Sequence record: MG752970.1
Strand: one strand, 5' to 3'
Length of the DNA: 64,000 bases
Below, one piece after another: positions 1-10,729 of the stretch (positions within the stretch are counted from its first letter, which is position 1; each line of letters starts with the position of its first letter). Made by a program: the position numbers and the translations under genes. Below the pieces are notes generated by a model that was not told where the DNA came from, made no database searches, and saw nothing but the letters and a program-made list of their open reading frames with translations.

Positions 1-28
1 CCCGCCGCGATGATCAATAGTAAAGGTG

Positions 29-1888
29 TCATATTTCTGTTTTTAAATACTTCGCACGAATTTTATCGATTAGATGCGTGTTAAGCATTTTTAAAAATGC
101 ATTCGTATCTGCCACACTATTTACTGGCAAACACTTGGCCTTCGTCTTCATACATTCGTCATTTCCTCTTTCTAGCTCATCTCCAAGATATGTGATTTCT
201 GATGCATTTAATTTCAGAAATGACTCATCATATAGAGCCGATTGCTTGTCCAAACCTACACTTGAAATATCAATAGTGGTCCGACCTGTTATTCTAATTT
301 TTAAATGATCATACCACTCATAGCCTTGAAGTAGAAACTTTAGGCCTACCATGACTGATTGTCGATATTCAGGATCCAACGGTTTAATGGATACCATCGC
401 ATTGCCTCTAACTCTAATCTTGGCACTGTGAATTCCCAGTGATGCTATTTTTTGGACCAATACATCAATGACTTCGTCTTCAAGTAGAAGATGTGGATTT
501 AGACATTTCTTAAAACCAATTTCTTCTGTGTGTGCGATAAACGTAGACGGGTCATTTTTTCTGGTTCCTGAGTATTTGTTGACTCCGCCATCCGCAAAAA
601 TATCTACGTTATAAATGTGTTGATTGATGGCGCGGATAGTATTACCCGTGATAATGGCTGGGGCATCAAGACCCAATTCTCTAAGCTTCGTTGCAATCTC
701 ATCGAGCAATTTTAAATTGCTAGCACTTAATTCTGGATTGGAATTTCCACGAGCAACCAACGTGTCATCATAATCAAACGCGAATTTCTTTGATTCGATA
801 TAATCTTTATAGAAATCCAGCAGGATGGTTTTTGCCAACAAGTCTGGATCATGCGTTTTTGAAGATTCTAGATGCGACAATTGCGCCAAAATACTTCTGT
901 TACCCGGATACGTTTTTTGCATTTCTTCAGATGCATTGAGATTGTAAACGGTGGTTATATCTTCTACAGGGAGATATTTTCCTTTATCTAAAGTTTCCAT
1001 AACGTCATGAGATGATAGACCCTTCATGTCTCTATCAGGAACGTTGTTCATGACAAGATATTTTTTAGCTTTAGAAGTTTTTATTGCATGATACATTCCT
1101 TCTGTTACGTAAGTAGGTATCAGTGAAGACCATTGAGTTCCTGAAGAAAAAATAATCAGATCGGCATAATGAATAGCCGTCGCCGCTTCTTCACTGATGC
1201 GCGGGCATTTAGCGTCACCATTCACGTCTTCAAAAAAGATTGTGTCAATTGGATCATCAATGCTGTCCCATGCTACGATGTCTTCTTCATCACGTAGAAT
1301 ATGTCGCGATTTTGTAACTGCTTTAAGAAATAGACTTTCGTCAGAATTTCCAATAACCCTATCTTCTGGAATACCAATCAATTTTGCCATGATCTTACCG
1401 GCTGCAAATAGTGAATTTCCATTCATGGCAGCAATAGCCGCATAAATGATATTTGCAACAGAGAAATCGGCGTAATCGACACTTAATGCAATTGCTTGCG
1501 CAAAATAATATCTGGTGGCAGTTAGCAGTAATTCAGTTTTGTCAGCATCTAAACCCAGATTTTTAATTCGTTCTGTCATCCATGGCTCAACTTCCACTGC
1601 CGCCATGGTGATGCGTTTATTTAGAAATTTTTCTAATTCTTTTCCGCCACTGAATGTGTCATATGATCCAATGATATCCGCATACGTGGATTGATTTTTA
1701 CGAAGATCGGATGGTCCTAAAATGTTACCATTGAACACCTGGCGAACCACGCCTGTTGACAGACCATTGTCATAATAATTTGCCAACACTTGGATTTTAT
1801 GCTGATTTAAGCTGCCGCCCAACACGGCATGCAGACCCTTTTGTAGGGCAATTGATCCGGTTCCGCCGGAAAAGATGACGATATTCAT
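29..1888 (-). CDS. Fusion: N-terminal YvcK/GlmR-CofD family domain + C-terminal HAD subclass IIB (phosphomannomutase-like) domain
   Basis: N-terminal IVIFSGGTGS...DNGLSTG...PSDLRKN and FSSGTQWSSLIPT motifs of YvcK/CofD; C-terminal DYDDTL (HAD motif I), ITGN, TGRTTIDI..GLDK and YLGDELERGND resembling PMM-type HAD IIB. Confidence 0.7.
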   Translation of the reverse strand: MNIVIFSGGTGSIALQKGLHAVLGGSLNQHKIQVLANYYDNGLSTGVVRQVFNGNILGPSDLRKNQSTYADIIGSYDTFSGGKELEKFLNKRITMAAVEVEPWMTERIKNLGLDADKTELLLTATRYYFAQAIALSVDYADFSVANIIYAAIAAMNGNSLFAAGKIMAKLIGIPEDRVIGNSDESLFLKAVTKSRHILRDEEDIVAWDSIDDPIDTIFFEDVNGDAKCPRISEEAATAIHYADLIIFSSGTQWSSLIPTYVTEGMYHAIKTSKAKKYLVMNNVPDRDMKGLSSHDVMETLDKGKYLPVEDITTVYNLNASEEMQKTYPGNRSILAQLSHLESSKTHDPDLLAKTILLDFYKDYIESKKFAFDYDDTLVARGNSNPELSASNLKLLDEIATKLRELGLDAPAIITGNTIRAINQHIYNVDIFADGGVNKYSGTRKNDPSTFIAHTEEIGFKKCLNPHLLLEDEVIDVLVQKIASLGIHSAKIRVRGNAMVSIKPLDPEYRQSVMVGLKFLLQGYEWYDHLKIRITGRTTIDISSVGLDKQSALYDESFLKLNASEITYLGDELERGNDECMKTKAKCLPVNSVADTNAFLKMLNTHLIDKIRAKYLKTEI

Positions 1889-1889
1889 T

Positions 1890-3020
1890 TTATTCCTTGA
1901 TGAGTTTTACTAGACCTTCACAATATTCTTTGATGTCTAGTTTGGTGTGCTGCGTCTGAAGATCCACTATTTGTTTCGCAAATTCTGGATCATTCTTAAG
2001 CTGTGTGACCCTATTTACGACATCATCGCGGGTTGATACGTATAGGAAATTAGATAGAATATCATTTCCGCCGTATACTCTCTTTTTGTGATCCAATCTT
2101 GAATCAATGAACGTGACGCATCCTGCAAGAATAGATTCGTAAATTCGCTGATTCAGCATTTCGAATTTTTCGTATGCTTCATCTCCAATGACCACATGCG
2201 ATAGTGCTTTCTGCATTTTCAGGATCATTTCGTCGTATTTCACTGCAGCACCATACGTAGGATGCCTTAAATCTCCTACTAACTTTGGAGTAAAATCTTC
2301 GGCTTTAATTTTGCCAAATAGCTCAACATTAATAGAATCTGGTAAACCGAAATAGAATTTGATTAGATTTTTTTCTCTTCGGCCGGAGCGCATCGTGCCA
2401 CCATACGACAAATCAAATTCCTTCTGTGATTCAATTAGCGTATTTGGAACTGGGAACATGAGCGGAAATTTTTCAAATGCATACTGCTTGAAATCCTTGA
2501 TACGAATTCCAGTTTTATCGAAAGCAGTTTTTACATGATCCAAATTGTAGCTTTGAGAAATTACCGTGATATCTTCGCGAGTGATTTCAATGTTCTTGCG
2601 TTCATAATCATTCGCCCAGGGTTTCTTCTCGATAGTCGGCCAAGCCTGTTTAAGCGTGAGATTGGGATCACAGTAGAGGTAAAAGACTTTACCTTTGAAG
2701 TTGTTGATAATGTCATAAATGATTGTTTGTGTTGGGTCATCGAGTCCACCGAAATAATTGATGTTCCCATTGATAATGCATAATGCGTCATAATCTTGTG
2801 CATTTACGTCTTTATATTCGTCACCAATTTGGTGCATGATTAATCCGGGAGTTGGATTAAATGATTCTTTAGCTAATACTTTGGTGTAGGCATGAACCTC
2901 AGCACCAGCACCTAACAGCATGTTAATGAGCGAACGTGCCTCACCATTGCCGCCAGACGTGTCACGAGTTCCCCACGCGATGCGCGCACCCAGTTTAACT
3001 ACAGCGATTTTTGTTGTCAT
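1890..3020 (-). CDS. bgt: DNA beta-glucosyltransferase (T4 BGT homolog)
   Basis: Colinear similarity to T4 BGT: KIAVVKLG, INGNINYFGG, YLYCD (catalytic Asp), YGGTMRSGRREK, VIGD, RIYE. Start moved from 3218 to the ATG at 3020, downstream of a TATAAATA motif. Confidence 0.85.
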   Translation of the reverse strand: MTTKIAVVKLGARIAWGTRDTSGGNGEARSLINMLLGAGAEVHAYTKVLAKESFNPTPGLIMHQIGDEYKDVNAQDYDALCIINGNINYFGGLDDPTQTIIYDIINNFKGKVFYLYCDPNLTLKQAWPTIEKKPWANDYERKNIEITREDITVISQSYNLDHVKTAFDKTGIRIKDFKQYAFEKFPLMFPVPNTLIESQKEFDLSYGGTMRSGRREKNLIKFYFGLPDSINVELFGKIKAEDFTPKLVGDLRHPTYGAAVKYDEMILKMQKALSHVVIGDEAYEKFEMLNQRIYESILAGCVTFIDSRLDHKKRVYGGNDILSNFLYVSTRDDVVNRVTQLKNDPEFAKQIVDLQTQHTKLDIKEYCEGLVKLIKE

Positions 3021-3064
3021 TTTGTAAACCTTGAAAAATAGACCCGAATGATTGGCCTCGGGTC

Positions 3065-3072
3065 TATTTATA
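3065..3072 (-). promoter_or_regulatory. T4-type late promoter TATAAATA upstream of bgt
   Basis: Exact TATAAATA on the minus strand 45 nt before the ATG. Confidence 0.6.
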
Positions 3073-3078
3073 TGAGAA

Positions 3079-3714
3079 TTAAAGAACTGATTGCTTATCT
3101 TTGGCGCGCTTGATCCATTCGTCTCTTTCTTCAAGAGACAATTCTGACCATGGCGCGAATAGATTGCAATGTAGAGTCGGGTGATTTGCGGCGTGATGCT
3201 CGTACAGATCCTGAGCAAATTTCATGAGATTTGGATGAACATCCTCCATCAATATTTGACGATTAGACTCTTCTTTCTTTTCATTTGTCTTTTTGCCAAT
3301 TGGTATTTTGATACCAGCTGCGTCAACGTCATTTTTGATTTTGATGATAATACTCAAAATGCCATTTTCTAGATTAGCCTGAGTTACTTGAGAATTAAGC
3401 GCTAGAGGAATCACCTTGGTGAACGCACGCGTAGCTATTCCTTTATGGATATATGCATCATGTGTGCTTTCATCTTGGGCTGCAGTTTGCAATCCACTAA
3501 CAATTAAATTTCCGTCTCTCACCGTGACTGTGAGATTTTCTTCAGAATAACCGGCAACGGCGAAACACACCACGTATTCCGATTCATTTAGTCTGAGAAT
3601 GTCGTACGGTGGAAAATTACTTGTCAAAAGCTGTGTTGGATGAATGTCCAATAGACGTTCAAGTCCTACTGACATTTTTGATGCTTCGCGAAGAAGCGAG
3701 ACTAGTTCATTCAT
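3079..3714 (-). CDS. Small heat-shock protein (Hsp20/IbpA-like) with C-terminal extension
   Basis: NFPPYDI, FAVAGYS, YIHKGIATRAF, ANLENGILSI alpha-crystallin motifs. Confidence 0.85.
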   Translation of the reverse strand: MNELVSLLREASKMSVGLERLLDIHPTQLLTSNFPPYDILRLNESEYVVCFAVAGYSEENLTVTVRDGNLIVSGLQTAAQDESTHDAYIHKGIATRAFTKVIPLALNSQVTQANLENGILSIIIKIKNDVDAAGIKIPIGKKTNEKKEESNRQILMEDVHPNLMKFAQDLYEHHAANHPTLHCNLFAPWSELSLEERDEWIKRAKDKQSVL

Positions 3715-3809
3715 GATATTCTCCTTTATTAAGCAAGAAATGTTGTTGTACCCATAAGGCGTACTTCTTATTTACTGCCCGGAGAATATCATGAATGCTG
3801 ATTATTTTG

Positions 3810-5141
3810 TTACCAACCGTGAGCCTCAGCTAAATCTTTCTTTAGAGTCTCAAGGGCTTCACCCCAATTGCCATCGACGCCTTGTCTATACTGATGATGA
3901 TCCCACCACACTGATTTTTCTTTTCCAAATCTCCATTCTAGTGGTGTAGTTACTAGCATACGACCACGCTTATCCAGCATGTCGAACAGATGGAAATTGG
4001 TATTAGCCACCCCAACATAATCATCCAATTTAGTGAGGGCATTTGGCATCGCGGTGACCATATTTTCATGGTCATTTAGGTGTGAATAATCAACAACGGG
4101 CAATTTTGTTGCAGCTTGAATAGCTCTAATTTCTTCTGGATTTGGATCTCGTTGCAATATAACGATGGTTCCCTTTTTAATAGTGGAAGCCAATTCAACT
4201 GGATCTATTTCTCTATTGAATGCTCCATCATTTCCCGTTCCAGCGCGCCATGTGAGACCGATGACTGGGCCATCCATTTGATCGATTTCGTGTTTCTTTC
4301 CTAATTTAGGACGAACAAATTTAAGGCTCTCTGGTACATCCGTTCTTCCTAGCATATATGGAACATCACCTACTAGGACCGGAGTGACCTGGGCCTCACC
4401 AGCGTATATATCGAAGCCACAGTGTATGTTAAGGATCTCATCAACAACTGGGTGCATGTTAAGGAGTATCTTAGCACCTCTAGCTTGCAGATCTGGAAGG
4501 TATCTTGCAAGCATCAACATGTCACCTATGCCCTGTTCACCTAAAATTCTAAGAGTTACGCCATCCAAATCGTGTGCAGTAGGAATGGTGGTGTAATGTC
4601 TTTCTGTTGTTCGGTGGATGTAGTTATTGAAACCATTCAGGAAATCACCCAATAGAAGCTGCAAGTTACAAAGAATTCTCTTTATAGTGCGGCTGTCTGG
4701 TTTCAAATATGCAGCCTTCTTAGTATACGTTAATGCATGTTCGTATTTTCCAGTTTGTTGGAAATAACCACCAAGATTAAAGTAAGCATCTGCCAAAATA
4801 TCCTTAGGACCATTCATTTCCAGAGTTGGCATGATTTTTTGGTAAACATTTTTAGCTTTCTCAAGATGTCCATGCTTTTGATACAGAGCTCCTATTAGAA
4901 GAGCATCCGCAATGTTCCCCGTGATGTGCAGCTTCTTATTAAGAGAAGAAACTGCTGCGTCAATTTGTCCCAAAAATTCATAGCACAAAGCCGCGCCATG
5001 ATAGGCAACAGCTTGTTCTGATGGTAAATTGGAATTACCTATGTAATTCTGAATTAATTGTAGAGAATGTTTTATCGTATCTTCGTCATTAGCAAGAATA
5101 GCATTTTGTATGCTTTTTACGATATCTCCAAGGTTAAACAT
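3810..5141 (-). CDS. TPR-repeat protein with C-terminal GT-B glycosyltransferase domain
   Basis: TPR helices (AYFNLGGYFQQTGKYEHAL); EQGIGDMLMLARYLP and IGLTWRAG motifs typical of TPR-GT9-like proteins. Confidence 0.65.
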   Translation of the reverse strand: MFNLGDIVKSIQNAILANDEDTIKHSLQLIQNYIGNSNLPSEQAVAYHGAALCYEFLGQIDAAVSSLNKKLHITGNIADALLIGALYQKHGHLEKAKNVYQKIMPTLEMNGPKDILADAYFNLGGYFQQTGKYEHALTYTKKAAYLKPDSRTIKRILCNLQLLLGDFLNGFNNYIHRTTERHYTTIPTAHDLDGVTLRILGEQGIGDMLMLARYLPDLQARGAKILLNMHPVVDEILNIHCGFDIYAGEAQVTPVLVGDVPYMLGRTDVPESLKFVRPKLGKKHEIDQMDGPVIGLTWRAGTGNDGAFNREIDPVELASTIKKGTIVILQRDPNPEEIRAIQAATKLPVVDYSHLNDHENMVTAMPNALTKLDDYVGVANTNFHLFDMLDKRGRMLVTTPLEWRFGKEKSVWWDHHQYRQGVDGNWGEALETLKKDLAEAHGW

Positions 5142-5956
5142 TTAGCACTTCCTCCGGCCTTCATGAATTCTGTTAGTGGTACTCTGTGGATTTTATATCC
5201 TCGTGCATTCAGCTTATGTTCATCTTCTTTCGACATATCGTTCACGATGATGTCGGTGCCGATTGAGATAGCATTACAACCGAACGCGTCTGCTGTTTCT
5301 TTATTTACACACAGAATTTCATCAAGTCCATACGAATCTACGATAGATTCATATGACACTTCGTCAAATGCATCTCTATAGAGCATGACATGTCCATTAT
5401 CAAGTGGACAAAAACAGGTATCTAAGTGGTAGAAATTTGGATTTATCAGACGTAGAGGCTTGACAACAATCCCATAGTCAGAAAGAACCTCATATGCATA
5501 ATCTACGAATGATCTATCGGTGCGAAACCCGTAACCCATGAAGAGTAGATCATCAAGTGCATAAAGAGCGTCGCCAGCCCCTTCAAACTTCTTATCGTCC
5601 GGGGTGGCCAAACATGGTAGTTGAAGCTGACTAAATGCCTTCAAAAAATTTGCTTCTTCGCCCTGTCGCTCTGGATTGGCAAATTTACTAACTATTGCTT
5701 TATGTGATCCACCATGTTTTAGATTTTTCACGATGAGACCAGCATTTGCAGTAAAAACCTGATCTGGAAGACCTTCTTCTGGATCCATGAAGATAGCTGC
5801 ACTACCAAGCTCGTAAATTTTGGACACCAGTGAAGCAAATTGTTCACTTGCCAGTTCTCTGTTTACGGTACCAATCTTACCACTCATCCATGGGTTGATT
5901 ACATAATCGACACCAAAGAAATGGGGCTCACACATCAAGAAATTTTTGGTTTTCAT
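5117..5956 (-). CDS. Amidinotransferase / dimethylargininase (pentein) family
   Basis: VDYVINPWM, PDQVFTANAG, FEGAGD, YHLDT, KAGGSAKCLT (catalytic Cys-His-Asp). Confidence 0.8.
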   Translation of the reverse strand: MKTKNFLMCEPHFFGVDYVINPWMSGKIGTVNRELASEQFASLVSKIYELGSAAIFMDPEEGLPDQVFTANAGLIVKNLKHGGSHKAIVSKFANPERQGEEANFLKAFSQLQLPCLATPDDKKFEGAGDALYALDDLLFMGYGFRTDRSFVDYAYEVLSDYGIVVKPLRLINPNFYHLDTCFCPLDNGHVMLYRDAFDEVSYESIVDSYGLDEILCVNKETADAFGCNAISIGTDIIVNDMSKEDEHKLNARGYKIHRVPLTEFMKAGGSAKCLTLEIS

Positions 5957-6585
5957 TAGAATGATACCTTTTGGGTTCCAATTTTTAGACCATTTGAATA
6001 CACACCGACTACCGTATCAAGAATAGTTTCAAATGGAGCATAGAATCCATTTTTGGCTACGTCTATGATTAGCTTGTTCTGAATGCTAGACTTGGTGACA
6101 GCAGAAATAAAGTCTTCTTGTTCTTCTTCTTTCTTTGAAAAATCAAATGATTCGCCGTCATCCTGAATGAATGAGAAATCTGAAGTTGTAAGCAGAACTA
6201 GCAGCGTATTTGAGCAACAATTACGTGCAGGTCCTTTTAACCCAAACGAGATTGATGAATGGACGTCGGTATATTCCAAATCAAATACATAATTGCCAGA
6301 ATATCCACGGTATCTTGGTGCGTATACAACCTCTCCAATGTGAGAACGATTGCATATTACTTTGGCACTAGAATCAAGAATATCAAACATATTCTTGAAA
6401 GATTCCATCTGATAGTAATACAAAGGATTGAAATTGGGATTTTCCAAATTGGCGTAAACATCCAACCTCTTTGGTTTTTCAAAGTGCATAACTTGAAAGA
6501 AGCCACACTTGTTTTGGATTCCATTTATTAGCGAATCTTTACCAAGCCTATCGACGCCTTCAATGATGATCGATGTGTATGTCAT
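5956..6585 (-). CDS. dNMP kinase (thymidylate-kinase-like; candidate hmdCMP kinase)
   Basis: IIEGVDRLGKDS P-loop, CNRSHIGEVVY motif; same operon as the TS-fold gene. Confidence 0.7.
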   Translation of the reverse strand: MTYTSIIIEGVDRLGKDSLINGIQNKCGFFQVMHFEKPKRLDVYANLENPNFNPLYYYQMESFKNMFDILDSSAKVICNRSHIGEVVYAPRYRGYSGNYVFDLEYTDVHSSISFGLKGPARNCCSNTLLVLLTTSDFSFIQDDGESFDFSKKEEEQEDFISAVTKSSIQNKLIIDVAKNGFYAPFETILDTVVGVYSNGLKIGTQKVSF

Positions 6586-6890
6586 TTAATTATCTTTCTT
6601 GAATTGGTGATGGGATATCCCATGACAATGTACTGATTTATAAGCTCAGTTTCTGCCTGCAATGCTTCTTCTTCGGTATCATAAACACGAATTGTAGAAA
6701 TCATGGGTTTATGTCCATCTGCAACGATGCCCCGAATATAGTCATGTTTCGGGGTTGTATGTTTATCGGATCTTGATTCTGATAAATGCTTCAGTAATCT
6801 GTCCGATGTTTTCTGATATGTTTTGCCAACATAAAATATTTGTTGGTTTCTAGGATCTATCAGACTGTAGACCGTTGTTTGTCTCGTCAC
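6582..6890 (-). CDS. Small GIY-YIG nuclease-domain protein
   Basis: VYSLIDPRNQQIFYVGKT...RL..H...E..LI...N pattern. Confidence 0.6.
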   Translation of the reverse strand: MTRQTTVYSLIDPRNQQIFYVGKTYQKTSDRLLKHLSESRSDKHTTPKHDYIRGIVADGHKPMISTIRVYDTEEEALQAETELINQYIVMGYPITNSRKIIK

Positions 6891-6926
6891 TTCTTCCTCT
6901 TATTGCTTTTCTAGAAGAAGCGATTG

Positions 6927-7346
6927 TCAAATGTTGATTCGTTCGTAGGCAAAACCGTTTTCGGTTGTGTAGTACACGTGCTTAATTCCATGGCGTATGA
7001 TCGCTTCCATACACGCAGCACATGGCCTTGCCATTCCCAGAACTGTCTTCTTTTTCTCTTGCTTTTCTCTATAGATATAGATTGAGCAATTAGAAAGATC
7101 ACGATATCTTACTTTATTGATCGCGTCAATTTCAGCATGAATGCAATGGTCAACATCAACAGTGTCGAATTTTCGGTGAACATTGAATTCTTTTTGAAGT
7201 GTGTGGGTTTTAGTTTGATTGGTGCCGACACTGAGAACATTTCTGTTGCGCGCAATGACGGCACCCATCTGAACGTATTTGTAGTCAGACGTGTATGACA
7301 CGCTCTTGGCTACATCAAACAATCGCTTATCTTTTGTGCTAAACAT
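6927..7346 (-). CDS. Zn-dependent cytidine/dCMP deaminase-fold protein
   Basis: HAE...PCAAC zinc-binding motifs. Confidence 0.75.
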   Translation of the reverse strand: MFSTKDKRLFDVAKSVSYTSDYKYVQMGAVIARNRNVLSVGTNQTKTHTLQKEFNVHRKFDTVDVDHCIHAEIDAINKVRYRDLSNCSIYIYREKQEKKKTVLGMARPCAACMEAIIRHGIKHVYYTTENGFAYERINI

Positions 7347-7382
7347 AGTACAAATATTGTAATTCGTCTAGCATCCTATGAG

Positions 7383-7607
7383 TTAAAAGGTTGTGGGCTT
7401 AGCTATACTTCTAACCAATTCCATAAATCCAACTTGAAGATCGGTTCTTGCTTTTTCCAGCCAGCGTGTATCTACATCTGGAATTTTAGAAATATCATCA
7501 ACTAATTGACCAACTTCTTCTGCCTTTGTCTTTACCGTATTGATGAAATGCTGCTCTTCTTCTGTGAGCTGTCTGTAGCCCTTGATGTTAGCTGTAATTT
7601 CTGCCAT
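7383..7607 (-). CDS. acb2: Anti-CBASS cyclic-oligonucleotide sponge Acb2 (T4 Vs.4 family)
   Basis: IKGYRQLTEEE...RWLEKARTDLQVGFMELVRSIAKPTTF closely matches the Acb2 pattern IKGYRDLS...[27 protein letters not shown]. Confidence 0.85.
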   Translation of the reverse strand: MAEITANIKGYRQLTEEEQHFINTVKTKAEEVGQLVDDISKIPDVDTRWLEKARTDLQVGFMELVRSIAKPTTF

Positions 7608-8443
7608 TACTCTGCCTTTTCAAATTTGTTCAACCACTTGGTAAATTGGAATTCCTTTGGAATTTTCTTGAATTCACCAGCTCGGAGGAATCTTACTTCT
7701 TCTGGACCAGAAATTGCTGGAGCCTTAATGAAATCGAACTCACCTGTTTCTACAATCTCGTCAAGCATCTTGAAGTGCCGTTCATAGACATGGAATGAAT
7801 CTGCACTGTGATGATACTCACCAAGCTGTAGGTCTGGATAAAATTCCTTAAGAGCCATCGCAACCATTTCATGAGTGAAACTGAAGCAAGGTGCATCGTT
7901 GCCCATTCCAAAAATACCATCCTGTGAGCGCATGCGAACAGTCATGTTCAGTTTGTTGTCACGAATGCGGAAATTCAGACAGTAAGTACAAGGAACGTCC
8001 TTCGTGTCAGATTGAAGATGTTCTTTGCGGAGAATCATCATGGATGCACGACGAGAATCCTTGTCCTCTTTCAGAGTATTGACCACCGTATCAAACTGAT
8101 TATCATCACCAAAGAAAATGTATTGACCATAGTTTGAATTAATTGAACCATCCGAATTGATCAGACCTCCCCACATTGAAGCGTGCTCTACAATTGAACG
8201 ATCGAATTTGTCACCCTTCAGATACCACAGAAATTCTCTCTTGATGTAATCCAACTTTAGCTTTCGTGCGGCAAATGATGGAAAGCGAACATATGGGGGA
8301 AGAGTGTAGGCGTAGTTTTCAATTTCTAAAACTAGCTGTCCTCTTGGAGAGACTTGTTTACCCTTTGCTTTTACGTCCTTGAAAATCTTTAGGAAGGATT
8401 TTTTATGTAGGCCCTTCGAACCTAGATGTGAATACTTACTCAT
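7607..8443 (-). CDS. Thymidylate-synthase-fold enzyme, probable dCMP hydroxymethylase
   Basis: Catalytic DVPCT; MRSQDGIFGMGND has Asp at the specificity position like T4 gp42 (MRSNDVVFGFRND), not Asn as in ThyA. Start at 8443 follows an AAGGAG SD. Confidence 0.8.
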   Translation of the reverse strand: MSKYSHLGSKGLHKKSFLKIFKDVKAKGKQVSPRGQLVLEIENYAYTLPPYVRFPSFAARKLKLDYIKREFLWYLKGDKFDRSIVEHASMWGGLINSDGSINSNYGQYIFFGDDNQFDTVVNTLKEDKDSRRASMMILRKEHLQSDTKDVPCTYCLNFRIRDNKLNMTVRMRSQDGIFGMGNDAPCFSFTHEMVAMALKEFYPDLQLGEYHHSADSFHVYERHFKMLDEIVETGEFDFIKAPAISGPEEVRFLRAGEFKKIPKEFQFTKWLNKFEKAE

Positions 8444-8507
8444 GGTGTGCTCCTTCTGAATTACGTGATATTTACTGCATCCAGGAGCTAGCAACACTGA
8501 CAGAAAT

Positions 8508-8529
8508 AGAAAAGGACCCGAAGGTCCTT
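8508..8529 (-). terminator. Intrinsic terminator
   Basis: AAGGACC-CGAA-GGTCCTT hairpin followed by a T-run on the minus strand. Confidence 0.65.
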
Positions 8530-8533
8530 AAAT

Positions 8534-9907
8534 TTACCAACTGCGCTTATCTTTGATGTCAATAATCCAATCTTTAAACTTGAGTTTAAGTTCGAAGAAT
8601 TGCGTTACCTCATCAAACCAGAAGATCATATCACGATGATACTGTGTTTTTATTCCTCGGCGATAATCGTATCCATACTTATTTTTTGGATCATATTGTG
8701 GGTTTTTCTCAACTTGAAGACCATTTAACATATCTGGGGTCTCCAGCAATTTATGCCCACCCATCTTGAGGTGATTTGATTTGTGAGACTGAAAATCTAC
8801 AATACTACCACTTGGTGGATCGTAAACAGTCTTTCCTGTTGAATAATCATATTTAGACTTTGGCTGGAAATATGATTCAACATCAGAGGATTCGATTCCA
8901 TCTACCACGAAGCTATCGGTATTTGTCTTAGCTATTACTGGTGTGAATTTAGGTCCATAATACTGAGACATCCAGCCGGTCATTCCATGAATTGATGCTG
9001 AATGTTTGTTATCCAGTCTTTTTCTGATACCAGTTCTAAGTCTATTTTCAACCACATCCGGAGAAATTTCTTCAAGAACGGTATCAAATTTAATTAGCTT
9101 TTTGGCGTCGTACGTAATAAACAGAGTATGAGAGTGTTTATCAGTCAAGCCAGCCGCAGTTACCTGTCCATCATTCACTAGATGGTTCATCAGGTATTCT
9201 TCAGCTTCTTTTTCTGTGTATGGCTTTTTGGCATCTTCAGCCTTGATCACTTCGGGGGTTTTCATGAAATACAGACGTTTATGTTCCGTCTCGTAAATCA
9301 CGTAAGTTTGATCTAGGTTGATTTTTCCAAAATCTGGAAATATATAGTTGAAATACCCGTACGTGACCTTTCCAAAGAAAATCCCCTTTGTATCATTCTT
9401 TAGCTCAACATAGTCACCAAGCTTCAAATCCGCAAGCTTCATAGACTTCGCGTAATGAACTGCTGATGAAGCCTGCGCCGCTTTATAAATTTCAGAATTT
9501 ACTGGGAGAAGAACAACCTTCGACCCATTTCCTTTGTCCCATCCCCAAACACAATCTTCGCTCATCACACCTTCGGAAATGTTGCAGTGGCCTAGCAGTT
9601 TAGCCAAATTGCCAGATGAAATTTCCAATTCGAACCCGCGCGGATCTTCAATTCGCCACCAAGTAGTAGTGTCATTCCACCCACCACCATGCGTAACATT
9701 TTTAGATATTCGCATGCCCTTCATGGGAGCATTATCTAAAATTTCCTTGCTGAAAACGTTACTCGACCAAGAGTTAATCGTCTCTTGACGCTTTCTGCAC
9801 GCAGCATTTTCTTCGTAATAGGTAGCAAAACCCAATTTGGTTGCTACACCATGCCTAGATTGATATCCTATGTAAAACTTTTCAGGAATGACGATTTTTT
9901 CGTTCAT
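8534..9907 (-). CDS. Hypothetical protein (457 aa)
   Basis: Long ORF on the coding strand; no recognised domain. Confidence 0.75.
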   Translation of the reverse strand: MNEKIVIPEKFYIGYQSRHGVATKLGFATYYEENAACRKRQETINSWSSNVFSKEILDNAPMKGMRISKNVTHGGGWNDTTTWWRIEDPRGFELEISSGNLAKLLGHCNISEGVMSEDCVWGWDKGNGSKVVLLPVNSEIYKAAQASSAVHYAKSMKLADLKLGDYVELKNDTKGIFFGKVTYGYFNYIFPDFGKINLDQTYVIYETEHKRLYFMKTPEVIKAEDAKKPYTEKEAEEYLMNHLVNDGQVTAAGLTDKHSHTLFITYDAKKLIKFDTVLEEISPDVVENRLRTGIRKRLDNKHSASIHGMTGWMSQYYGPKFTPVIAKTNTDSFVVDGIESSDVESYFQPKSKYDYSTGKTVYDPPSGSIVDFQSHKSNHLKMGGHKLLETPDMLNGLQVEKNPQYDPKNKYGYDYRRGIKTQYHRDMIFWFDEVTQFFELKLKFKDWIIDIKDKRSW

Positions 9908-9925
9908 AGTTTACCTTAGTTTAAA

Positions 9926-10729
9926 TTACCATGGATGATTGCGGGTTTTCTTACTGCGTGGCTTAGATGACCAATTACGATCGTAGATAAATCCAGGATT
10001 GATAGTGTTTCCTTCGCGAACATAACGCTTGCGCGAAACACTAACTTTGACAAATGTTCTATCCATGTCTTCGTGAGCCAGAGCGCACCGGTGAACATCG
10101 TACGGAGTCATTTGAATCACACTGTACGGGTCGTAAGTGATGATCTGGTCCTCATCCAGCCCCTCTGCGATACGATCAAACACCTTCAGTGATGTTTCAC
10201 AGTCACCATCTTCCAAAGGAAAGACAGCATTGAAAAATTCAGTAGGAAGTTTATCGTAGCAGATATATGTGTGACTTACTGGACCCGTTTCGCGCACCAA
10301 CTCCTTAGTCTTCTTTCCAGTAATGTCTACTTGTTTTCCATCTTTGTCAGAGATGAATGCGTCAGAATGCGCACCTGCTCGTCGATGGGTGGCATTTGCC
10401 TTTACGGTTTTCTGATCAACCGTGATGTACACGTAATGATCTTCTTCGTAAAACCCATATTGCGATTCACGAGCGTGAATCATGGTCAGAAGCTCACCAA
10501 AATTGTCCAGAATTTCAACCGGAATCTTCCAGCCCTGTTGGGGCATGTGAAGAGGCAAATCAAGAACGCGAATTCCTTTCCAGTCAGAAAAGCGTTGGGT
10601 ATTAACCAACTTGCCAATAGGAACACCAACATGGGGTCTCAAGCCAAATTCCTCGATATTCCACATTTGCCTATCTCGGCGAACAAGAGATGGGAATCGC
10701 AGGGACGAAATGATCTTTTCAAAGTTCAT
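9926..10729 (-). CDS. Putative 2OG-Fe(II) oxygenase-like (double-stranded beta-helix) protein
   Basis: RRAGAHSD (HxD), YDVHR (distal His) and RTFVKVS (Arg) spacing. Confidence 0.5.
   Translation of the reverse strand: MNFEKIISSLRFPSLVRRDRQMWNIEEFGLRPHVGVPIGKLVNTQRFSDWKGIRVLDLPLHMPQQGWKIPVEILDNFGELLTMIHARESQYGFYEEDHYVYITVDQKTVKANATHRRAGAHSDAFISDKDGKQVDITGKKTKELVRETGPVSHTYICYDKLPTEFFNAVFPLEDGDCETSLKVFDRIAEGLDEDQIITYDPYSVIQMTPYDVHRCALAHEDMDRTFVKVSVSRKRYVREGNTINPGFIYDRNWSSKPRSKKTRNHPW

Follow-up and report, generated by a model that had tools for sequence, protein, structure and literature searches.

In bacteriophage T4, cytosine is modified in two stages: a thymidylate synthase (TS)-fold dCMP hydroxymethylase, gp42, acts on the mononucleotide, and the DNA is glycosylated afterwards by a β-glucosyltransferase (BGT). 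T4 relies on host UDP-glucose for the second stage. Here we analyse bases 1-64000 of the Ralstonia jumbo phage RsoM2USA (MG752970.1; record 343,806 bp), a 64,000-nucleotide stretch referred to below as the window, in which a group of minus-strand genes at positions 1-8443 follows the same logic. The first 9 kb of the window match record positions 1-9000 at 100% identity. We put at about 75% the probability that RsoM2USA has a pathway, T4-like in logic but assembled from partly different components, that places glycosylated 5-hydroxymethylcytosine (5hmC, or hmC) in its DNA. Our calls are drawn from homology, diagnostic residues, predicted folds and gene linkage; enzymatic activities, the sugar and the extent of cytosine replacement are inferred from these.

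The TS-fold protein of RsoM2USA, ORF10, has an active-site signature identical to that of the T4 hydroxymethylase, and its BGT-family glycosyltransferase, ORF2, keeps the catalytic Asp and the UDP-binding Arg and Glu residues. Both phages also encode a separate ThyA, a dihydrofolate reductase (DHFR) and a dCMP deaminase. However, ORF2 is 28% identical to T4 b-gt (BLASTP, 2e-42) and represents a separate subfamily in which a YvcK/CofD-PMM fusion protein and a nucleotidyltransferase nearly always follow BGT (24/26 lineages), whereas neither gene lies beside T4 b-gt. The RsoM2USA kinase has a thymidylate-kinase fold, with no similarity to T4 gp1 found, and the phage has MazG/PRA-PH proteins only, in place of a gp56-type dCTPase. 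The TS, deaminase and kinase genes of RsoM2USA are clustered; in T4, gene 42 is followed directly by b-gt, with 56 elsewhere in the stretch compared, so the gene order is unlike that of T4, as a first-pass annotation of the window had recognised. RsoM2USA also differs in host, a beta-proteobacterium, and in its 344-kb jumbo genome. The core of the system is a T4-type hmC pathway, unreported so far in such a host group and genome class. It is a variant of the known scheme, not a copy, because of its conserved BGT/YvcK-CofD-PMM/nucleotidyltransferase unit, its thymidylate-kinase-type kinase and its PRA-PH enzyme. The literature we searched held no paper tying RsoM2USA to DNA modification.

Other systems share parts of this arrangement. 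The closest cultured-phage homologs of ORF10 are those of Xp15 and Acinetobacter phage Effie (39-40% identity, same signature), but their TS is paired with a carbamoyltransferase, whereas RsoM2USA pairs its TS with BGT and a donor module. Two genes from the ORF10 homolog in each of these phages (5321-8744 in Xp15 and 4875-8789 in Effie, of the stretches examined) lies a gene of ~1.64 kb. That of Xp15 is annotated as a carbamoyltransferase; that of Effie, alike in size and position, is unannotated. Xp15 and Effie may carry 5-carbamoyloxymethylcytosine, matching a system described from metagenomes. The Asp177 TS modules of the MetaGPA study (PMC8670742) have the same co-occurring deaminase and PRA-PH domains as RsoM2USA. 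RB69 and DLP3 resemble it in their TS homolog, which has Asp at 177 and is acidic at 143, and in having phage genes for nucleoside diphosphate (NDP)-sugar synthesis and DNA glycosyltransferases; RB69 also encodes a thymidylate-kinase-like protein, RB69p045, beside its TS, with weak similarity to the RsoM2USA kinase ORF6 (E 4e-4). RB69 differs in its Asn169, the mark of a flavin-dependent hydroxylase, in its lack of BGT homologs and in its use of arabinose, whereas ORF10 keeps Asp169. In heptosyl-5hmC clusters (bioRxiv 2023.12.21.572611), a glycosyltransferase (GT) of T4-BGT architecture relies for its donor on a HAD fusion protein and a nucleotidyltransferase, as we propose for RsoM2USA. There, however, 5hmC arises through a post-replicative methyltransferase and TET, in contrast to the pre-replicative TS homolog of RsoM2USA, and the HAD domain is fused to an APH-like kinase, whereas in RsoM2USA a PMM-type HAD is fused to a YvcK/CofD-like domain.

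ORF10, a predicted dCMP hydroxymethylase

The genes for the TS-fold protein, the deaminase, the kinase and the BGT stand on the minus strand where the first-pass annotation had placed them, as their coordinates and family matches show. ORF10 (7607-8443, minus strand), identified in family scans, matches Pfam Thymidylat_synt (PF00303) at 85 bits. Among PDB sequences its best match is the T4 dCMP hydroxymethylase (1.4e-22), followed by the CMP hydroxymethylase MilA (5e-20) and by E. coli-type ThyA at about 1e-10. ORF10 keeps the residues expected of a TS fold: C146, which is catalytic, E58 and Y94 of the proton relay, and R126, R127 (Arg126/127' in the dimer numbering), R166 and S167, which bind phosphate. 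H207 and Y209 are present as well. HMMER pairs RMRSQDGIFGMGND of ORF10 with NMRSNDVVFGFRND of T4 gp42, and the last Asp of the ORF10 segment is aligned to T4 Asp179, which corresponds to Asn177 of E. coli ThyA. The Asp that had been noted at this position from the sequence is therefore borne out by the alignment, and all 120 of the best metagenomic homologs have it as well.

For a comparison by residue we drew reference enzymes from annotated records and aligned them to ORF10, using E. coli ThyA numbering. At positions 58, 80, 94, 143, 146, 147, 166, 167, 169, 173, 177, 207 and 209 it reads E, W, Y, D, C, T, R, S, D, G, D, H and Y, and it equals T4 gp42 at all 13 of these active-site positions. 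Four of them, 143, 147, 169 and 177, separate the reference enzymes by product. ORF10 has D/T/D/D, as does T4 gp42 (product 5-hydroxymethyl-dCMP, 5hmdCMP), a match consistent with the earlier prediction of dCMP as substrate and of 5hmdCMP as the likely product. E. coli ThyA (dTMP) has L/H/D/N, and the RsoM2USA ThyA, ORF473 (dTMP), has I or L at 143, depending on the alignment, with H/D/N at the other three. RB69 gp48, which makes 5-hydroxy-dCMP (5hodCMP), has E/T/N/D; SPO1 gp29, which makes 5-hydroxymethyl-dUMP (hmdUMP), has D/N/D/N; and the PaMx74 TS, which makes 5-methyl-dCMP (5mdCMP), has N/P/D/D. PaMx74 serves here as the reference of the 5-methylcytosine (5mC) type, a stand-in for XP12, following a preprint in which it is said to replace C with 5mC (bioRxiv 2024.12.05.627091). 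Work from the Weigele and Peters groups indicates that N177D selects dCMP as substrate, that L143D/E accompanies a hydroxymethyl and not a methyl product, and that D169N marks the flavin-dependent 5-hydroxy-dCMP synthases of RB69 and DLP3 (PMC13326640, 2026). Positions 177 and 147 were also found independently to separate cytosine-modified from unmodified viral contigs (PMC8670742).

The signature is highly conserved. The 120 best metagenomic homologs are 58-68% identical to ORF10, apart from one at 97%. The 13 residues recur in every one of them, the sole deviation being one Ser167-to-Ala substitution. In a maximum-likelihood tree (LG+C20, 34 sequences), one clade (support 99/96) unites the ORF10 family with Xp15/Effie, with gp42 of T4 and Aeromonas and with RB69 gp48; outside it stand PaMx74, SPO1/SP10, PW916/phage G and the ThyA pair. 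Branching within this clade is unreliable, as its branches are long.

The nesting of RB69 gp48 in the clade counts against our reading, since clade membership alone leaves the product unfixed. ORF10 could in principle make 5-hydroxy-dCMP, as RB69 gp48 does, or 5-methyl-dCMP, as enzymes of the XP12/PaMx74 type do; Asp177 is common to ORF10 and those enzymes. The argument against a 5-hydroxylase must rest on residues and not on the clade, because RB69 gp48 shares the latter with ORF10. ORF10 has Asp169, whereas all tested 5hodCMP synthases have Asn (PMC13326640), and it has W80 and G173, both absent from RB69 gp48. As to a methylase, Asp143 contrasts with Asn in PaMx74 and Leu in ThyA, Thr147 contrasts with Pro in PaMx74, and a 5mC product would deprive the BGT homolog of its acceptor. 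We therefore regard either product as very unlikely. Taken together, the published diagnostic residues, the tree, the linkage to BGT in many independent phage lineages and the fact that the genome has a canonical ThyA besides support ORF10 as a putative dCMP hydroxymethylase rather than a synthase of dTMP, hmdUMP, 5mdCMP or 5hodCMP.

Two further phage enzymes came to light in these comparisons. The 'deoxyuridylate hydroxymethyltransferase' of the Pseudoxanthomonas phage PW916 (2974-3792 of the stretch examined) carries Asp177 and Asp143, as does its AXL3 homolog. Both look dCMP-specific from these residues, and the annotation appears doubtful. The PW916 enzyme was accordingly not used as a dUMP-hydroxymethylase standard, because it carries Asp177; a search for its relatives recovered neither PaMx74 nor XP12. 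In Bacillus phage G, gp319 (7971-9017 of the stretch examined) has the full hmC-type signature and lies near the dCMP deaminase gp317, the 'alpha glucosyl transferase' gp313 and the glucose-1-phosphate thymidylyltransferase gp309. Glycosylated hmC may be present in this 498-kb phage too.

ORF2 and its conserved partner genes

The BGT gene lies downstream of the TS gene, as had been noted. ORF2 (1890-3020, minus strand) belongs to the T4 BGT family (Pfam T4-Gluco-transf, PF09198), with matches to PDB 1BGT at 5.2e-39 and to phrog_7922 at 3e-57. In the HMMER alignment to 1BGT, which spans residues 50-328, the T4 catalytic base Asp100 and the UDP-binding residues Arg191, Arg195, Arg269 and Glu272 are identical in ORF2. 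Metagenomic homologs of ORF2 are numerous, 45-56% identical over their full length and often encoded on contigs of 300-370 kb. Two such contigs have, next after BGT, a gene for a CofD-domain protein of ~600 aa and, after that, an NTP_transf_3/IspD-like gene, the order also seen in RsoM2USA, where ORF2 is followed by ORF1 and then by ORF486 across the record ends.

To count such partners we searched 36 BGT loci (34 from IMG/VR and 2 others) with the RsoM2USA proteins, collapsed the loci to 26 lineages (<90% BGT identity) and scored genes within 10 kb. A CofD-like protein (the CofD-PMM fusion) follows BGT in 24 of the 26 lineages, and a nucleotidyltransferase is found in 24/26. An ORF10-type (hmC-type) TS is present in 18/26, an ORF6-type kinase in 16/26, as a rule immediately upstream of BGT, and an ORF477-type PRA-PH gene directly downstream of the cassette in 9/26. 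Among the BGT-linked TS genes the hmC signature is universal (23/23), one having Cys at 147. BGT, the YvcK/CofD-PMM fusion and the nucleotidyltransferase are a conserved triad, with the BGT gene first. The fusion, the nucleotidyltransferase and the PRA-PH NTP pyrophosphatase (NTP-PPase) are three conserved partners beyond those in the first-pass annotation; with these additional genes the system is a variant of the T4 scheme whose sugar may or may not be glucose.

Two observations concern the composition of related loci. A 360-kb RsoM2USA-like JGI contig has two GT2-family glycosyltransferases instead of BGT (5890-10564 of the stretch examined), directly upstream of an hmC-type TS and an ORF6-type kinase, and one of the two has methyltransferase and TPR matches. 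Glycosylation machinery thus seems exchangeable among relatives of RsoM2USA. On one metagenomic contig a 185-aa gene downstream of TS was considered as an ORF6 homolog and proved unrelated.

ORF1 (29-1888, minus strand) joins an N-terminal YvcK/UPF0052/CofD-like domain to a C-terminal HAD domain of the phosphomannomutase/alpha-phosphoglucomutase (PMM/alpha-PGM) type, as judged from Pfam, AlphaFold2 (AF2) and Foldseek. It matches Pfam CofD at 4.9e-22, and in the C-terminal half its homologs match Hydrolase_3 (11/19) or eukaryotic-type PMM (5/19). The HAD motifs DxDxT (D372/D374/T376), Lys K548 and GDE..GND (G569-D577) are invariant in the family. In an AF2 model of high confidence (pLDDT 91.7), the nearest Foldseek matches of the N-terminal domain are UPF0052/YvcK structures (2ppv/2hzb; E 2e-15, TMt 0.74-0.77), with CofD/FbiA weaker (E 7e-9, TMt 0.6-0.69). 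The C-terminal domain matches the atypical alpha-phosphoglucomutase 4bnd (E 5e-10) and 8b5v and PMM1/2 (about 1e-9), a fold of the mutase type whose activity may be that of a mutase or of a phosphatase.

The nucleotidyltransferase gene is split by the record ends. Its 5' end lies at 1-32 of the window (minus strand), and the remainder, at record positions 343806-343044, is annotated as a truncated ORF486. As annotated, ORF486 lacks the N-terminal GxGTR motif present in all homologs. When the record end is joined to the start, the frame opens to an ATG at window position 32, giving MTPLLLIIAAGNGTRMG... and regaining the nucleotidyltransferase motif IIAAGNGTRMG. Because joining the ends restores both motif and start, we conclude that the record was cut inside this gene and that the assembly ends are contiguous. 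This ATG shares the sequence ATGA with the stop codon of ORF1; the two genes are adjacent and probably translationally coupled. The family is nearest to the GlmU N-terminal domain, archaeal sugar-1-phosphate nucleotidylyltransferases and IspD.

The linkage of a PMM-type mutase and a nucleotidyltransferase to ORF2 raises the possibility that its donor may be an NDP-hexose other than UDP-glucose. The same linkage can be read in another way. In the CofC/CofD pathway, CofD transfers 2-phospholactate from a GDP-activated donor. By analogy, the CofD-like domain of ORF1 could add a phospho-linked group (hexose-1-phosphate or another phospho-alcohol), drawn from an NDP-activated compound made by the nucleotidyltransferase, to glycosyl-hmC or hmC, which would create a hypermodified base containing a phosphodiester. 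All 19 of 19 ORF1 homologs have the CofD family match, the adjacent and probably coupled CofD-like and NTP_transf_3/IspD-like genes recall the CofC/CofD pairing, the triad is nearly invariant (24/26 lineages), and a model of donor supply alone leaves the CofD-like domain jobless. However, the structural comparison places this domain nearer to YvcK/UPF0052 than to CofD/FbiA, and donor synthesis alone explains both the mutase-type HAD and the sugar-1-phosphate nucleotidylyltransferase-like enzyme. Moreover, the literature searched gave no phosphodiester-linked base modification of this kind and nothing that connects CofD to DNA modification, to hmC or to jumbo phages. We consider such a transfer quite unlikely. 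That the triad makes an undescribed base in a broader sense, by phosphodiester addition to glycosyl-hmC or through a sugar other than glucose, is likewise improbable in our judgement. The likeliest reading is that RsoM2USA produces glycosyl-hmC DNA from an NDP-hexose supply of its own.

Nucleotide supply and the proposed pathway

ORF6 (5956-6585, minus strand) was first linked to nucleotide kinases by a weak thymidylate-kinase PHROG match, and like ORF8 and ORF476 it has no match among PDB sequences. Its AF2 model, built from 40 homologs (pLDDT 93.2), aligns in VIA-align with SPbeta YorR (2axp/3kb2; Z 15.8) and with many thymidylate kinases (Z 12-13.5), and in Foldseek with human TMPK (E 6e-6); its P-loop reads GVDRLGKDS. 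T4 gp1 (PDB 1DEK) is absent from its 50 best structural matches. By its predicted structure, then, ORF6 is a nucleotide kinase of thymidylate-kinase fold outside the gp1 family. The dNMP kinase proposed earlier for the operon holds as a nucleotide kinase but shows no similarity to gp1, and ORF6 may perform the role of gp1 without sharing its ancestry.

ORF8 (6927-7346, minus strand) is a zinc enzyme of the dCMP/cytidine-deaminase family by Pfam (dCMP_cyt_deam_1, 8.6e-15), PHROG (phrog_174 dCMP deaminase, 6.4e-23) and its HAE and PCxxC motifs, so that the operon does contain the deaminase that had been reported. Its substrate may be dCMP, dCTP or a modified C nucleotide. A second, more typical dCMP deaminase is ORF217, and DHFR is ORF194. 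A Pfam search of the whole record returned exactly two TS-fold genes, ORF10 and the canonical ThyA ORF473 (243 bits), the latter being the separate thyA that the first-pass annotation had thought worth seeking. Between ORF473 and the record end lie ORF477 (Pfam PRA-PH) and ORF476, both MazG-type NTP pyrophosphatases. PRA-PH and dCMP-deaminase domains are the commonest beside Asp177 TS homologs in cytosine-modified viral contigs (PMC8670742; bioRxiv 2024.12.05.627091). On family membership, ORF476 and ORF477 are plausible candidates for a dCTPase.

We propose the following pathway. ORF10 would convert dCMP to 5hmdCMP with methylene-tetrahydrofolate as donor, ORF6 would phosphorylate 5hmdCMP to 5hmdCDP, and host NDP kinase would form the triphosphate. 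ORF476/477 would be candidates for the removal of dCTP, returning dCMP. The deaminases ORF8 and ORF217 would supply dUMP to ORF473 and ORF194 would recycle folate, such that T stays normal. Replication would then put 5hmC into DNA, and after replication ORF2 would add a hexose to the hydroxymethyl group. For this donor, the HAD domain of ORF1 would convert hexose-6-phosphate to hexose-1-phosphate, and the GlmU/IspD-like nucleotidyltransferase would convert the latter to NDP-hexose. There is a precedent in the BGT-like GT that needs a HAD-bifunctional enzyme and a cytidylyltransferase to put heptose on DNA (bioRxiv 2023.12.21.572611).

The presence of ORF8 two genes downstream of ORF10 allows a different outcome, in which ORF8 deaminates 5hmdCMP, or the triphosphate, to a 5-hydroxymethyl-dU (5hmdU) nucleotide, and (glycosyl-)hydroxymethyluracil replaces some T in place of modified C. 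Deaminases linked to Asp177 TS enzymes can use 5-substituted cytosine nucleotides, and some gave 5hmdU in vivo, although those were linked to a TS of the 5mC type (bioRxiv 2024.12.05.627091). PW916 and AXL3 also have an Asp177 TS beside a deaminase, the PW916 enzyme being the annotated dUMP hydroxymethylase. However, RsoM2USA still has the genes for normal dTMP, namely a canonical ThyA and a DHFR, and BGT-family enzymes are known for 5hmC. An ORF8-type deaminase occurs near BGT in only 1/36 loci at the threshold used and is not a conserved member of the cassette. We view a uracil product as highly improbable.

Several observations weigh against glycosylated hmC in RsoM2USA, in addition to the position of RB69 gp48. 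The residue rules that we applied to ORF10 are correlative and derive from a limited set of enzymes with known products. The substrate of ORF6 is a prediction, and the YvcK/CofD-like domain of ORF1 stands without a role in donor supply. HMMER and BLAST left the N-terminal 50-70 residues of ORF2, where T4 Glu22 falls, unaligned; the ORF2 subfamily has an invariant Glu27 in a Gly-rich loop that may be equivalent. The closest cultured relative, XacN1, has a canonical ThyA only, without an ORF10-type TS or BGT, and a search there for ORF6, run with no positive control, was also blank. From this we take the hmC module to be accessory and presume that it is expressed. In the RsoM2USA genome paper (PMC8504454) hydroxymethylcytosine goes unmentioned, and neither restriction tests nor nucleoside analyses appear. 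Finally, neither the gp56 family (phrog_173) nor a trimeric dUTPase was found in the whole record, BLASTP showed no similarity of ORF476/477 to T4 gp56, and the closest solved relative of ORF477 by sequence is the MazG-like NTP pyrophosphohydrolase DR2231. A search for a dCTPase, which had been suggested earlier, thus yielded MazG/PRA-PH candidates in place of the T4-type enzyme.

These last findings bear on how much cytosine is replaced. The complete replacement foreseen in the first-pass annotation is one possible outcome. With dCTP inefficiently excluded, virion DNA could hold a mixture of C and glycosyl-hmC, or modification could be absent from it; the missing gp56-family enzyme, the missing trimeric dUTPase and the candidate-level specificity of ORF476/477 are consistent with this. 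On the other hand, PRA-PH NTP-PPases are statistically tied to C-modified contigs (PMC8670742), and in 9/26 lineages such a gene directly follows the BGT cassette. We hold partial or absent modification to be somewhat unlikely, and favour the pathway to glycosylated hmC set out above.

Neighbouring genes and significance of the locus

The neighbouring genes from ORF10 to ORF1 are tightly packed, with spacing from overlaps to 95-nt gaps. A terminator-like hairpin between ORF11 and ORF10 (8512-8529, minus strand; 7-bp stem, 4 G-C pairs, T-rich tail) is the sole intergenic one on this strand here and lies just upstream of ORF10. One transcription unit from ORF10 fits this spacing and the lone hairpin, which possibly marks the start of the unit; terminator-like sites in the region are no more numerous than chance, and the hairpin is thus weak evidence. 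Family scans characterise the remaining genes, all on the minus strand. ORF9 (7383-7607; 74 aa) is an Acb2/Tad1 hairpin-domain protein (Pfam 2.2e-15), of a family with which phages sponge up the signalling nucleotides of CBASS/Thoeris; its gene is part of the nucleotide-metabolism operon, its start overlapping the ORF10 stop. ORF7 (6582-6890), between the deaminase and kinase genes, is a small stand-alone GIY-YIG domain of 102 aa and may be a remnant or minimal homing endonuclease. Some metagenomic ORF10 homologs are fused to NUMOD3 (PF07460).

ORF5 (5117-5956) resembles arginine dihydrolase/DDAH (NCBIfam Arg_dihydro, 247 bits, under the cut-off). In two related large contigs its homolog is near TS or BGT genes and adjoins NAD-salvage genes; RsoM2USA likewise has an NAD-salvage gene near ORF5, the NAPRTase ORF14 (673 bits). 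We rejected ORF5 as a pathway member on its homolog occurring in 1/36 BGT loci, and also the TPR protein ORF4 (3810-5141) and the Hsp20 protein ORF3 (3079-3714), which have 0 homologs in the related BGT cassettes (36 loci).

GenBank MG752970 tags each gene of the region 'hypothetical protein'. The genome paper names ORF10 a 'putative thymidylate synthase', ORF2 a 'beta glucosyl transferase', ORF8 a deaminase and ORF473 'Td thymidylate synthetase' (PMC8504454); the published annotation thus calls the key enzyme a thymidylate synthase and is silent on modified DNA. Public sequencing runs sharing RsoM2USA DNA are soil metagenomes only (6-8% of words), and contigs cannot reveal base modification.

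RsoM2USA is a cultured phage of a major crop pathogen, Ralstonia, and is considered for biocontrol. If its genome contains glycosylated hmC, such DNA would account for resistance to restriction enzymes and to many CRISPR nucleases, with consequences for how the phage is sequenced, cloned and engineered in host range. A phage-borne donor supply, if it exists, would end dependence on host UDP-glucose. Dozens of uncultured phages, among them several contigs >300 kb, carry this BGT subfamily, nearly always together with its two partners, and the role of the CofD-like domain is directly testable in this culturable system. Should the triad make an undescribed base, RsoM2USA would be the first cultured phage in which to study such widespread hypermodification of viral DNA.

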